DNA from: Oculina patagonica
Lineage: Eukaryota
Assembly: GCF_052425735.1 (NCBI RefSeq)
Contig: NC_135770.1
Location: forward strand, 37,634,001 to 37,698,000
Direction: 5' to 3'
Length of the DNA stretch: 64,000 bases
Shown: piece after piece, positions 35,587-45,223 of the stretch
Position numbering within the stretch: the first letter of the stretch is position 1
How the letters are laid out: each line of letters starts with the position of its first letter
The notes under the pieces: generated by a model
Told to the model about the DNA's origin: nothing
Database searches by the model: none
The model's input: only the letters and a program-made list of their open reading frames with translations
Position numbers and translations under genes: made by a program

Positions 35587-38500
35587 ATGTCGCTCTTGTA
35601 TTTTTTTGAGACAAGTCTTGAGTACCATGGTTTGACTTCGAAGCAACTTTATCAGTTGTGGCTGAAACATGCTGGGGCAGCGTTTAAATTGTACGAGCAA
35701 GGTATAATGAAATACGCGTTCAAGGTAGGTCCATCAAACAAACTTACCTCATTGTGTATGAGTATTGTGCTGGCCATTTGGAAAATACTCAGATATTTTA
35801 TTGCACCGAGAGATCGATCTGATATCTAAACTCCTTATACAATCTCGTCTACTGAGGGTTTGTATTACTGTACCTTTGCAAAACATGATGTTACAATCAC
35901 ACGTAGTATTGTTTGAGAGGATTGGTACTGATATTTATTTTTTGCATTCGATGCATTTTTATCTCAAATTTTTTTTAGCTCAGTCTAACCAGTATTGCTC
36001 GGGAGATAGGTCGGTTATATTTTATGAATTTTTTAGTCAAGTATACTATCCAACGGACTGAAATCGAATGTTATTTAAATCATGATAAAGAGATTTTCTT
36101 GTCATATTTTATAAACCTCACAATGTTAAGTCAACTTATTATCACATGGCCAGAAATTCCGGTCAACGCCACGGCGCACGCGCGAGTTTAATTGGCAATA
36201 TGGCCGCCAAACACTCAAAGGAAATGTATGAGAGAAATAAAACAAAATAAAACAGAGCAAGTTCTGGCCTACCGGGAACAAGTGCCGCCCTCTTCTCGAG
36301 TTCTTGAAAGGTCCTTCGGCTATTCTGATTAGTTTTTTTTCATCAACAAATGATACTGGCCCTGCTTTTTATCGATGTTTATTTTCGAAGCTTGGCTCAT
36401 ACAACGCTCTATATTTCAGAGGCTTGAAATCCAATATTTGCATCCCAAGCAGATTTTGATCCGCCGTAGCAGATAACATTCGCTGAATATCCCAAGTGCC
36501 GCCCTCGTTTGAGGATAAGCACCGTATGATGTACTATTTCGCCAATTTTCACCTTCGGTGCTGATTTCTTCGTCCTGCTTTTTGCTTTTAAAAATCTCGT
36601 AAATCGTCGAAAAGCAAACCAGGCGGCAGTCCATGTTGAAATCCAAAATCCGCTGTCTTTGAACTGCGATATTTCAGCCGTCTTTGCTCCAATTTTGCTG
36701 CAAAAGCCATCGTTTGAAAGATCTTTTGCTCCATTATTTTTATCGTGCAATACTTTTGACCAGTGGTTTCCCTACTACACAAAATATTCATCTATGTAGG
36801 CCTCATTCTTGTGTCTTCCTCGATATTTATGAGCCCAAAGTCACGCTTTTGAATCAGCGGCTATTACCAACTTTCGTGACCGCTAAATGTACGATGCATC
36901 AAAATTCGCCGAATCCGATGTCCGCGATTTCTGGCCATGATTCGAATCTGACGAGTATGCAGGAAACACCCGAAGAGTTAATGCCACAGAAGTGATTATC
37001 ATGATTATGTACCCTTCGATTAACGCGCAGTATTTCAAGAAGGTCTTAATGGAACTGATTTCATCCGTTGAATGACAGTTAAAAATTTGTGTCAGTTTCC
37101 CATCCAAGGTAAATAACCACAGGAAGAAATTGACAATGATCAATATTTTTAAATGCATTCCAAAGTAAAAATCCTTTTATTAACAACCGGAATTCGCGCG
37201 GGGGCTCCTGGACGCGGTGCTGCAGACCCGAGGAAGACGTATTGTCTTTGCAGCTGACTGCTTTCCGACAGTAATCAACTGTTATCCGACTGTGCCCGAC
37301 TGGTCCTCGAATACCCTTCAACTTGGCTCGACTGTACCCGAATCTTCCTAGAATGCACCCAAATGTTCATGAGTGTTGCCTGCCAACTTTGCATGCCCAG
37401 TTTAAATTAAGTCCTGAGCTTTGTCGCGAGCCGGATAGAAAAAAAAGTGTCGCTGCGTTGTTCGAATAAATTGACTCGAAATTAATGGAAAATTTTGGGT
37501 AACAATGCGCAGCCATTTCTCTCTGATAATCGTTGTATTGTACGTCGGCAAAAATCTTTATCAATATCGAAAATTGAGGTGTTGATATTATGTTTAGCAT
37601 ATCCTGAATTTTTTGTATGACTAAATAATATAATGTTTGCAGCAGTACTGTCTATACACTACGTTGCTACTCCTAAAATATAGTTCATTTTTCTGATCTT
37701 GGATGTGGAATTAAGAGCATGAAAATAAATCCTTTTAAACTTTTTTTTCTCGGTTACGGCGTGAAGTTAATTAAATTACACGCATTGGGAAAACATCTAC
37801 GCTCACTCTAGACCACTCTATCGATTCACCGTAAGCTGGTGAATCAATTTCCGAATTTTCCGTTACTCTTTCATGTTCCTCTTAAAAGTGTTTATACTGT
37901 CTTATGTTGCTTCTTAGTACAAGAAAAAAACTCAACATTGATGACGATTGCCCGGGGGGGGGGGAAACTCCTTTATGAAACGGACGGGGATGCTCGTCGG
38001 AAATTTTGAAAAGAACCCCTAAAAGAGACCAACCTGGGTGTGGCTCAAGCTTCTCTTGATCCCTAAAAGATACCAAAAAAACTAAGAATAGAATTTATAT
38101 TTGTATTTTTCTTCGTGTGTAACCCTAAACGAGACCATATCAGAAAAAAATCTTGACATGCCTTGGTAGAAAGAAAGATTCTTACAATCTATGATTGTCG
38201 TGCTATCCCTCCATTGTCGTTTCCTTAATAAACTATACCTGAGTACTTGCCCGGATTTTTTTTAAAAAAACATAATTCTTTAACTCCTATTTTCCCTACA
38301 TTTTATTGTTATCGTTTTTCTTTTTTACAGATATCTGGAGAAAGAAACGTCCTTGGCGGTAATTAGAGAACATTATTTTAATAAACATAAGCTCATCAAC
38401 ATCAAGGAATAAATTGATGGGGTGGGTGGAATAAATTCTCCCTTTGATTTACCAACACACACAGGGCAAGTTGGAAGGACAAACTAAAAATTTATCAGAA

Positions 38501-40247
38501 GACACTTGGGGCTTTAGGTCAGGGGCCCCTTTAATTGTTGCATGTGTGTAGTGGATAAAGCAATGCCCAGTTCCCCTAATATAAAAGTGACAATAGAAAG
38601 CAAGGGACCGCGGACGAAAATGCTGCTAGTGTACGTAGGAGCTGGCGACAGCTCTAATCAGCCAAAAATAAAAATACAGAGACAAGAACTGCAAGGCTGA
38701 CACTACGTAAGACGCGTCTGTAGGAAATAATTATGGTATGCAAGTCACCGCCAGACAAGAGTTGCATGATTCTCACCAAGATCGCCTCATGAAGAGAATT
38801 AGGCGTTCTTCTTTCTACTGACTAAACTATGAAGTCACTCATTCACTAGACTGTAAAACAGTTATTTTTCCACAGTATGCACCATTCTTAAAAAAATTTA
38901 GTGTTCAATGGATTATCCAAAAGAGGATGATTTTTAACCTTATTTTTGGTCCATAGCTAACTTTTTAAGCTAAATGTAATTACTGTATTTCTAAACTAGC
39001 TCAGCTGAGCTTGCGCCTGCTGTTTTTTCACAGTGATGTCAGTGGATTCTCCGGCAGTACTGGACACGTGCTTTGCCGAGCTTCCTCTTTACCAGACCCT
39101 CGGAGACCAACTGCACTCGACATTTAAAGCCCTGAGGCAATACGAAGGATTTGCCTCCGATGTAAGCGAGAGAGCTGGGAAAGAGGATAGGTATGCGGAA
39201 GAAAAATCAAACTTGAAGAAAGGCTTGTTTTATTTTCTGACGTTTACCGTGGAATACGATTCAGGTGAGCTATACGTGAGATGTTAAACATGTTTCAATT
39301 AAGCCGTGAATTGCATATGACAAAGCTTAATTTTATTTTCTTGCAATGACTTTATCTTTCAACTGACCTCAACTTATCTCATAATTTTCCAAAAGCTATG
39401 ACGCAACAAGATCTTTTAACAGTCTGGGCCGAGGAGGCCAAGGAGGCACTAGGTGCGAAAAAATCTGGAATCATCCTGGACTTGTGGAAAGTGGTAGCAG
39501 AACGAAAGGTATTATATCTGGCCTTAAAAACGCGATAACCAACTTCTAATTCTAGTTGTTATTTTTCGCTATCTGCAGGAAACAGATTACAGTTACTGTT
39601 AATGAAGCCCTGTAATGAACCATGTCATGTCACTGATTGGCTTTAATTTACATTTGACCAATCAGGAGACACTTTTCGACTGTCCACAGTTTTTACGTCA
39701 TAAACGCATTACAGGTATTAATTTTTTGACTCAAATCTCAAATGTGTCTGTTAAATTTTGTTGCTGGGAATTTTTTTTACTTCCTCCTAGTTATTTAATT
39801 TGCAATCGTATTTTGACGTGTCGATAGAGTTACTTGAGTAAGTTCGCTTTAAAATCACGCGCGAGTGAACGCGCGGAATTCATTTGTCCGTGCGTCAAGA
39901 AATGGTTCGTTCCGCCACGATCGTCCGCCATTTTGTTTTTCATGCCTGCGCGCGTCCTCCGTTTCCGTATCCAGTGGTCTCCCGCAAATCAAACGAGCAA
40001 CTTGAAGCAAGTCTAACCATTCTGATGAGACTGAGAGAACTTTGATCAACTTTGTAATGTTGTTTACCTTGCATGGTCTTTATTTCAGGTTCTAGCAGTC
40101 GTGTGTGTAGAGGATCCAGCTGATGTTGACAGAATGTCATTAGACCTGCCAATCATGAAAAAAATGGGAGATAAGGTCCATGTGGAGTGCAAGTCAATAC
40201 GACCGATAGTGGAATGGGCCGAGGACCTTAAAAAGCTTGCAGAGTAG
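35587..40247 (+). CDS. Tandem muconolactone-isomerase-like protein, paralogue B, 222 aa, 5 coding exons
   Basis: Exons 35587-35724, 38331-38358 (28 nt), 39034-39264, 39396-39508, 40089-40247; 669 nt open frame. MSLLYFFETSLEYHG...AFK/ISGERNVLG/VMSVDSPAVLDTCFAELPLYQTLG...LRQYEGF...LFYFLTFTVEYDS/AMTQQDLLTVWAEEAKEALGAKKSGIILDLWKVVAERK/VLAVVCVEDPADVDRMSLDLPIMKKMG...SIRP...LAE*. Confidence 0.88.
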
Positions 40248-44200: not shown

Positions 44201-45223
44201 CTGGCCAATCACAAAGGACACAAACAATTCACTTAACCAAACAAAACTAGAGTAAATACTTGTAGCAGGCGCGAAGCGCGGGAAAACGTGTGCGAATGAA
44301 CAGTGATTGGTTTTGGTTTTGCTTCTTATCAGTTGCATAAATGAATGGTGCGATATTCTTAAACCAAACGCTAAGTAGTAATGCAAAAAAAAAGCAAATA
44401 CGAATTACTTCCAACACTCAAGTCTCTCTTTCGCTTTATATCTCCAAACCAATTCTAAATTAGGCAAGACGCAAGACGAGTTGTTGACCGTGTGGCTTCA
44501 GGAAGCTAAAGTTGCTTTGGGAGGCAAGAAAAGTGGAAAGGTGGTGGACTTGTGGAAAGTGGTGGGGGAACGAAAGGTAATGTGTCGGGAACCATGCATC
44601 AAGCTTACCTAGCCCCGCCCGATAATGAGGTCATAGTCAACTCTTACTGTGAATTAAGACCAACCTTCGGGCCATTTGTTTTCGGAGGATGACTTTTGAC
44701 CGAAACAAAAAGAGCGAGTACCGGGGCAACTTTTCAAATTTATTCCACGTCTTCAAAACTATCATGTGCTATGCCAATCCTATCTTGTTCCGAGTTTTCC
44801 CGTATTTATTGTAAAACGACATGATTGGTAAGATAGTAGTTCTTGTACTTGTTTTCCTATCTGAAGGTCCTACAAAATTGTTAAATATGTTTTTTTGGTT
44901 TTCTCTCCTGTGCAGAGGTTCCCTATGGGGCGTTCGTTATCAAAATCCGCTGAACAGGATGAGTTACTCCTGCACTTACTCCGTACAGCGGACTATCCCC
45001 ACCGAAAACTATGTAGAGGAGAGAGTGCTTGGTTAGCTTTATATTTGTTTGTGTTTTGTAGGTGTACATCCTGTTATGTGTGGAGAGCCCGTATGAAGTG
45101 GATCGCATCTCATTTGACCTGCCCATGATGAAGCAGATGGGAGACTGCATACACATGCAAGTCAAATCCGTCAGGCCGTATGAAGCTTTTTATGATGATC
45201 TTAAGAAGATGGCGTCCACTTAG
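41281..45223 (+). CDS. Tandem muconolactone-isomerase-like protein, paralogue C, 224 aa, 5 coding exons
   Basis: Exons 41281-41418, 42789-42816 (28 nt), 43105-43338, 44464-44576, 45062-45223; 675 nt open frame. Two ~100-aa internal repeats, each with W..EA..AL..K..G....WKVVGERK...[DE]SP...DR....LPM.K.MG......RPY. Confidence 0.9.
43734..44058. mobile_element. TTAA-flanked MITE in an intron of paralogue C
   Basis: ttaa aggtgatgtta...taacatcacc ttaa. Confidence 0.55.

Follow-up and report, generated by a model that had tools for sequence, protein, structure and literature searches.

Muconolactone isomerase (MIase) is a textbook enzyme of bacterial aromatic catabolism, and the locus described here raises the question of what genes for the same fold are doing in a coral. 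The genes in question form a tandem array in a 64,000 nt stretch of the Oculina patagonica genome (contig NC_135770.1, positions 37,634,001 to 37,698,000, forward strand; hereafter the window) and just upstream of it. A first-pass annotation, made from the letters of the window alone, had described three spliced genes here, each encoding two MIase-like repeats, and had proposed that they descend from a bacterial gene and act on lactones or on aromatic or halogenated metabolites. The answer that we favor, at a probability of roughly 0.55, is that the array consists of expressed genes for fused MIase-fold proteins, which are putative enzymes with one active half and have an old, bacterial-type origin.

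Genes A and B lie entirely within the window, both on the + strand. Gene A spans 35587-40247 and encodes a protein of 222 aa, and gene B spans 41281-45223 and encodes one of 224 aa. The fragments seen as separate open reading frames (ORFs) join into complete genes of five exons each, with open frames and with GT..AG at every splice site, as follows.

Gene A, 35587..35724, + strand: exon 1, 46 codons from an ATG start, encoding beta1, helix 1 and beta2 up to 'FK'; ends in phase 0 at the donor GTAGGT; junction 35724|38331 present in RNA contigs of X3, X4 and X5.
Gene A, 38331..38358, + strand: exon 2, a 28-nt microexon encoding ISGERNVLG plus 1 nt, the beta2-beta3 hairpin of domain 1; located by a search for splice sites and phase, with its two junctions present in RNA contigs.
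Gene A, 39034..39264, + strand: exon 3, C-terminal half of domain 1, linker and beta1 of domain 2; RNA contigs cover 39033-39262 and continue into exon 4.
Gene A, 39396..39508, + strand: exon 4, domain 2 from helix 1 (WAEEA, Glu146) through WKVVAERK; on its own it matches Pfam MIase (E 0.015, profile positions 15-49), and its junctions are in RNA contigs.
Gene A, 40089..40247, + strand: exon 5 including the stop codon, C-terminal half of domain 2 with the DLPIMKKMG motif; junction 39508|40089 found in four RNA runs.
Gene B, 41281..41418, + strand: exon 1, N-terminal half of domain 1 (WATEA, Glu28); on its own it matches Pfam MIase (E 2.9e-4, profile positions 1-45), and junction 41418|42789 is in RNA contigs.
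Gene B, 42789..42816, + strand: exon 2, a 28-nt microexon encoding VVGERKVFC plus 1 nt; both junctions in RNA contigs of X1 and X2.
Gene B, 43105..43338, + strand: exon 3, C-terminal half of domain 1, linker and beta1 of domain 2; covered by a 1491-nt RNA contig that joins it to exons 4 and 5.
Gene B, 44464..44576, + strand: exon 4, domain 2 from helix 1 (WLQEA, Glu147) through WKVVGERK; on its own it matches Pfam MIase (E 0.019), and its junctions are in RNA contigs.
Gene B, 45062..45223, + strand: exon 5 including the stop codon; supported by an RNA contig.

The first-pass annotation had thus put both spliced genes at the right places, and to its models we add the microexon that it had missed in each. 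The microexon came to light through a mismatch of phase, exon 1 ending in phase 0 and the following large exon beginning in phase 1. Its inclusion restores the 'V-G-E-R-K' beta2-beta3 hairpin of domain 1, which is otherwise absent. A four-exon model lacking the microexon was rejected: the phases clash, the alternative donors at +4 delete the hairpin, and the RNA contigs show the microexon.

The proposed splicing is borne out by transcripts. All eight junctions of genes A and B were found in contigs assembled from public RNA runs, which come from three organisms and several studies and match at 95-99% identity. Between the window and the RNA contigs of related samples, gene A differs by 18 synonymous and 2 non-synonymous changes and gene B by 20 and 5, respectively. 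Since these differences are mostly silent, genes A and B are under purifying selection.

RNA contigs also map to the introns of these genes. At 37915-38236, 42707-43117 and 44077-44350 they pile up to depths in the thousands, and these pile-ups most likely represent dispersed repeats or transposon fragments. At 36144-36948, in intron 1 of gene A, contigs of moderate depth are present in all four runs and are separate from the gene A mRNA; this signal is some transcript or repeat.

Each protein consists of two repeats of about 100 aa, which are 31% identical to each other in gene A and 47% in gene B. In a local computation with a profile of Pfam-positive members of the bacterial single-domain subfamily described below, the spliced products of the five paralogues of the array (genes A-E) scored 133-213 bits; single domains scored 46-126 bits, and each was aligned from profile positions 2-6 to positions 100-103 out of a total of about 105. 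As both domains are covered end to end at these scores, the repeats are far beyond chance. The assignment to the Pfam family MIase (PF02426) made in the first-pass annotation, together with its two tandem domains, is upheld by homologues well above the Pfam cut-off of 26.7 bits: P0001, which is 80% identical to gene B, scored 74.6 bits in two stretches, P0021 scored 76.4 and P0019 scored 70.1. Three exons of the window match Pfam MIase singly, at 15.5-21.4 bits and at the right profile positions, and exons of the N-terminal half alone reach the reporting filters. An exhaustive search with an exon-3 profile returned 91 proteins, and the full-length matches carry two MIase stretches above the Pfam threshold. 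An exon-by-exon search of the coral genome with PF02426 gave no matches because the introns split the domains. That genes A-E encode two-domain proteins of the MIase family is well supported.

The predicted structure agrees with this assignment. An AlphaFold2 model of P0092, which is 90% identical to gene B, has a mean predicted local distance difference test score (pLDDT) of 91.6 and a predicted template-modelling score (pTM) of 0.88, and folds into two beta-alpha-beta-beta-alpha-beta units, with a C-terminal helix after each. Domain 2 of this model superposes on the 5-chloromuconolactone dehalogenase ClcF (3ZO7) with Z 12.1 and a root-mean-square deviation (rmsd) of 1.3 Å over 84 aa, and domain 1 on ClcF (3ZNJ) with Z 11.9 and rmsd 1.8 Å, as expected from the dimeric-barrel fold named in the first-pass annotation. 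The single-domain profile matches the muconolactone isomerase CatC (1MLI) at E 4.5e-5. Profiles were required, as a search of the PDB with single sequences returned ClcF only at E about 0.75-0.9. The two ferredoxin-like MIase-fold domains are predicted to form a covalent pseudo-dimeric alpha+beta barrel.

Such barrels are built by homodimers in some families and by duplication and fusion in others (PMC4835899). Chlorite dismutase, HemQ and DyP are likewise fused two-domain ferredoxin-like alpha+beta barrels, but they are heme enzymes, unrelated in sequence, and match the model at Z about 10-11. Two-domain MIase proteins of about 200 aa also occur as actinobacterial clusters in the ESM Atlas, and the model matches them with template-modelling (TM) scores of 0.71/0.79. 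Because none of them is among the 91 matches of the exon-3 profile, the actinobacterial fusion is probably independent of the animal one.

The two halves of the animal proteins are not equally conserved. At the position of Glu27 of CatC and ClcF, a Glu is present in 33 of 36 domain-2 sequences from animals, in all 11 sequences sampled from bacteria, and in 18 of 36 domain-1 sequences. In the coral paralogues the domain-2 residue is Glu146 (A), Glu147 (B), Glu148 (C and D) and Glu146 (E), and the same column of domain 1 holds Glu28 in gene B, His28 in gene A and Arg in gene E. In the LP..K..G loop, LP and G are kept in 35-36 of 36 domain-2 sequences, as against 22-24 of 36 for domain 1. Domain 1 has drifted in four of the five coral paralogues, as judged by lower profile scores, and genes A and E have also lost the Glu. 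Glu27 is the residue replaced in the ClcF structure 3ZO7, whose title is 'ClcFE27A with substrate'. The retention of the Glu and the loop in domain 2 and their degeneration in domain 1 point to a pseudo-dimer in which one half would carry out the chemistry and the other would complete the barrel. The coral proteins are thus most likely cofactor-free acid/base enzymes with a working site in domain 2, made up of the Glu27 equivalent, the WK..GER hairpin and the LP..K..G loop, while domain 1 would mainly supply the second half of the barrel. The reaction would be a proton-transfer isomerization or an elimination on a small unsaturated lactone or carboxylate.

The nearest relatives of the coral domains are a distinct bacterial subfamily of single-domain proteins of 104-106 aa, with a median identity of 41% and a maximum of 54% to animal domain 2. 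It was found at 291 places in genomes that include Cyanobacteriota, Chloroflexota, Pseudomonadota, Nitrospinota and Polyangiaceae; members are present in Dolichospermum, Richelia, Pseudonocardia and one coral-associated Endozoicomonadaceae genome. The bacterial sequences are highly conserved (62-78% identity across phyla) and are annotated as 'MIase family protein' or, wrongly, as 'transporter'. They share motifs with the animal proteins along the whole domain, namely EY..M.Q.DL..IW.EEA.AALGAK..G.V.DLWKV.GER.V, LD, LPIM.KMG and R.YE.F. In contrast to the bacterial proteins, which are single-domain and intronless, the animal proteins are fused two-domain products of genes with four introns, and their domain 1 has diverged.

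Some bacterial members deviate from the common form. P0172 and P0175 (151 aa) begin with a hydrophobic leader containing RR that is Tat-like by eye, which suggests a periplasmic location. A further protein with an MIase domain, P0173 (339 aa, on a 60-kb contig of a public run), combines this domain with HATPase_c (PF02518) in a precomputed Pfam list.

In a phyletic survey that depends on naming in protein collections, two-domain homologues were found in Anthozoa (the stony corals Porites, Desmophyllum and Stylophora), Scyphozoa (the jellyfish Aurelia and Sanderia), Hydrozoa (Clytia), Placozoa (Trichoplax adhaerens) and three Branchiostoma species. This range contradicts an acquisition specific to corals or cnidarians. 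In the last word-index protein search, Branchiostoma paralogues were the sole additions among the 8000 candidates listed. All four introns have the same positions and phases in coral, Trichoplax and amphioxus, the microexon included; the amphioxus and Trichoplax junctions were read directly from the DNA of the loci. The shared plan consists of a phase-0 intron after 'WK/FK', the 28-nt microexon, a phase-1 intron in the Gly codon after 'EY.' and a phase-0 intron after 'ER[KL]'. Therefore, the fused gene with four introns predates the split of placozoans, cnidarians and bilaterians. No intron lies at the domain boundary, and domains 1 and 2 have their introns at different sites, which fits a gene that was still intronless when it was duplicated and fused and that acquired its introns afterward, the course of events that the first-pass annotation had suggested.

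Several loci in this survey have features of their own. In Trichoplax adhaerens, the public 159-aa model TRIADDRAFT_52683 is truncated; upstream of it (L092:3087-3374) lie a first exon missing from the annotation (3087-3233) and a microexon of 28 nt (3347-3374, VVGERKAYV), which complete a two-domain protein with the coral exon plan. In Clytia hemisphaerica (P0167, L082:17651-25110), the whole tandem-MIase part occupies a single exon, suggestive of intron loss or of a retrogene, and an N-terminal extension of about 70 aa (MGSGTSKK...CC) resembles myristoylation and palmitoylation signals by eye. In Branchiostoma belcheri (L081:8001-10945), exon 1 and the microexon are duplicated locally (8001-8496 and 10474-10945); two isoforms are annotated from one start, and the stored DNA differs from the RefSeq protein (P0048).

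Where did the gene come from? In a tree of single domains, the animal domain-2 sequences form one clade (support 100/98), the bacterial sequences form another (90/80) and the two are adjacent (89/91), while the faster-evolving domain-1 sequences form a grade. Forcing domains 1 and 2 into one clade costs only 0.36 log-likelihood units (approximately unbiased (AU) test, p 0.485), so that the data are fully compatible with a single duplication in the animal lineage. The tree has a single long-branched outgroup (L090, the sole other MIase-like protein in the sample of 61 genomes), which gives a weak root and leaves it unrooted in effect. Every named eukaryotic match is an animal. Given the broad distribution of the single-domain form in bacteria and the restriction of named eukaryotic matches to animals, the simplest reading is that the gene arose in bacteria and was transferred no later than the animal stem, and we lean modestly toward it. 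A single-domain gene of bacterial type would have been duplicated and fused and would then have gained four introns, all before placozoans, cnidarians and bilaterians diverged; it would later have been lost from most animal lineages and expanded in tandem in scleractinians. The bacteria-to-animal transfer proposed in the first-pass annotation is thus compatible with the data, as the nearest relatives are bacterial, and is a plausible candidate on an effectively unrooted tree.

The same data leave some room for an origin without transfer into animals, that is, vertical descent from an early eukaryote or a common ancestor with near-total loss, or transfer from a eukaryote to bacteria. As the gene goes back at least to the common ancestor of placozoans, cnidarians and bilaterians, massive loss is needed in any scenario; the bacterial clade, at 62-78% identity across phyla, is shallow compared with the animal domains; and the tree fixes neither the root nor the direction. 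Vertical descent, however, sits poorly with an identity of up to 54% between domain 2 and bacterial proteins, which is high for a split of bacteria-eukaryote age, and a fused gene with introns is unlikely to have given rise, by transfer, to a single-domain gene in bacteria. Both variants have to accommodate the absence of named eukaryotic matches outside animals and the presence of the single-domain form at 291 places in many bacterial groups. We regard these accounts as possible, though less likely.

As for function, several points weigh against the enzymatic part of the preferred reading. One conserved Glu is no proof of catalysis; the catalytic role of Glu27 was reportedly described by Roth and colleagues in 2013. 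To our knowledge, neither the bacterial nor the animal members of the subfamily have been assigned an activity, a substrate or an oligomeric state. The gene neighborhoods of the bacterial relatives offer no pathway hint: no conserved neighbors were found beyond synteny among close cyanobacteria, and the annotated neighbors (a papain-like protease, an NDH subunit, PTPS, MlaD, PEP mutase, a HAD hydrolase and a cNMP-binding protein) are mutually unrelated. The full-length Pfam and structural tests were made on stand-ins that are 80-90% identical to gene B and 46-48% to gene A. The coral proteins begin directly at strand beta1 (MSLLY...), with no signal peptide by eye, and for this reason are probably cytosolic; this, too, was judged by eye only. 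Finally, the best structural match of the whole chain, at VIA Z 17.2 and with 181 of 184 residues aligned at an rmsd of 3.0 Å, is ovorubin (9UAJ), a binding protein and not an enzyme.

This match raises the alternative that the coral proteins are non-catalytic carriers of small molecules, whose tandem barrel would enclose a hydrophobic ligand such as a carotenoid or lipid, and that ovorubin is a divergent secreted member of the same animal family. Ovorubin (PcOvo/PV1 of apple-snail eggs) is an animal protein of similar size with a tandem ferredoxin-like barrel. Its Z of 17.2 stands apart from those of all other two-domain ferredoxin-like proteins, which reach 11.2 at most, and it is also the top match in Foldseek (E 9e-8). 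A second two-domain protein, of 278 aa, which we take from its accession to be a mussel protein, is the top match among AlphaFold-DB clusters (TM 0.76, 19% identity). The likeness, however, has no counterpart in sequence: identity to ovorubin is 11%, the two-domain profile matched PcOvo5 at E 1.4 and out of register with the structural alignment, and up to E 10 the single-domain profile matched none of the ovorubin chains. Ovorubin, a storage and defense protein that binds carotenoids, is secreted and has a residue numbering that starts at 21, whereas the coral proteins seem to have no signal peptide, and homology between the two is unproven. Moreover, the strong retention of the Glu27 equivalent and the loop motifs in domain 2 and in bacteria is a better fit to catalysis than to bulk lipid binding. 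On balance, a carrier function appears doubtful. A combined history, in which an ancient bacterial-derived fused family retained an enzymatic role in corals, jellyfish, Trichoplax and amphioxus and became ovorubin/PV1 in molluscs, is a tentative proposal that we consider somewhat unlikely.

Much less probable still is a function as true isomerases of muconolactone or chloromuconolactone, with the products of aromatic or halogenated ring cleavage as substrates. They share with CatC (1MLI) and ClcF (3ZNJ, 3ZO7, 4FPI) the Pfam family, the fold (Z about 12 per domain), a Glu at the position of Glu27 and the W-[KR]-x-x-G hairpin. CatC and ClcF, in contrast, consist of one domain of 94-96 aa, assemble into homodecamers and are encoded in catechol or chlorocatechol operons, while the coral proteins are fused dimers with 16-23% identity to ClcF in structural alignments. 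Against the CatC equivalog model TIGR03221, whose cut-off is 130.6 bits, P0092 scored 47.3 bits, P0020 scored 22 and the bacterial subfamily scored 38-43, and the amphioxus, Trichoplax and Clytia proteins gave no match. No genes of the beta-ketoadipate context (catA, catB or pcaD) were found among the neighbors in the window or the annotated neighbors of the bacterial relatives, and no intradiol dioxygenase (PF00775) was found in the coral genome by the exon-by-exon search, which makes for a weak negative. The coral proteins are therefore not CatC orthologues and belong to a distinct branch of Pfam MIase. For muconolactone or chloromuconolactone chemistry, the role taken up from the first-pass annotation, the shared fold is the sole support.

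With 16 kb upstream of the window added, the array comprises five intact tandem paralogues, A-E, each with the five-exon plan and about 222-227 aa. The third gene reported in the first-pass annotation (302-2820, here gene C) is real, and the local expansion that it had proposed extends to five copies rather than three. Gene C is cut by the start of the window, and its missing exon 1 and microexon lie 1.4-2.5 kb upstream, as follows.

Gene C, C13:37631504-37631650, upstream of the window: exon 1.
Gene C, C13:37632609-37632636, upstream of the window: microexon encoding ICGENKLIG.
Gene C, 302..529, + strand: exon 3 of the spliced model.
Gene C, 1299..1411, + strand: exon 4, WTEEA with Glu148.
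Gene C, 2653..2820, + strand: exon 5 including the stop codon; the full gene C model encodes 227 aa.

Genes D and E are two further intact copies upstream of gene C (224-227 aa). Matches in a search of the coral's own genome were confined to one contig, within about 57 kb; this contig measures 38 Mb in an assembly of 529 Mb, and the G+C content of the window is about 0.35-0.45. Desmophyllum pertusum carries at least two adjacent copies.

The other genes in the window are of ordinary animal kinds: an OTU protease, two G protein-coupled receptors (GPCRs), a SID-1-like gene, an exon of a 2-hydroxyacid dehydrogenase and an SH3-DC-STAMP gene. The GPCRs are single-exon ORFs of the rhodopsin type between genes C and A (12946-13926, 326 aa, and 31529-32503, 324 aa), both with the Pfam domain 7tm_1 at E about 1e-33. 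The SID-1-like gene (20929-23418) is an uninterrupted ORF of 829 aa with the domain of the SID-1 double-stranded RNA channel (E 1.3e-35); an uninterrupted ORF is unusual for this family in animals. At 60248-63442, an ORF of 1064 aa contains SH3 and DC-STAMP domains according to Pfam. Bacterial contamination or mis-assembly is ruled out as the source of the array by the four GT..AG spliceosomal introns per gene, the spliced transcripts in several RNA runs, the 38-Mb contig with its flanking GPCR, SID-1, OTU and DC-STAMP genes, the gene G+C of about 0.35-0.40 that matches the remainder of the window, and the orthologues in other coral genomes.

A literature search on muconolactone or MIase-like genes in animals (coral, cnidarian, amphioxus, invertebrate and horizontal gene transfer) found nothing relevant, and databases list the animal proteins of this family as uncharacterized. 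The results place a distinct branch of the MIase fold in animals, in the form of a conserved and expressed gene that is under purifying selection and whose exon structure, down to a 28-nt microexon, has stayed unchanged for more than half a billion years. The family is present in placozoans, cnidarians and amphioxus, has apparently been lost from most other animals and has reached five copies in a reef coral. The conserved Glu of domain 2 is a defined target for enzymology, and the shared introns make a clean case for dating an ancient candidate transfer between domains of life. The structural likeness to ovorubin, an orphan carotenoprotein of snails, is a testable link; if the combined history were true, it would provide an origin for the orphan ovorubin family and connect the coral gene cluster with the handling of pigment- or lipid-like small molecules. 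For the coral itself, the finding corrects the view of a coral-specific acquisition tied to halogenated or aromatic chemistry.

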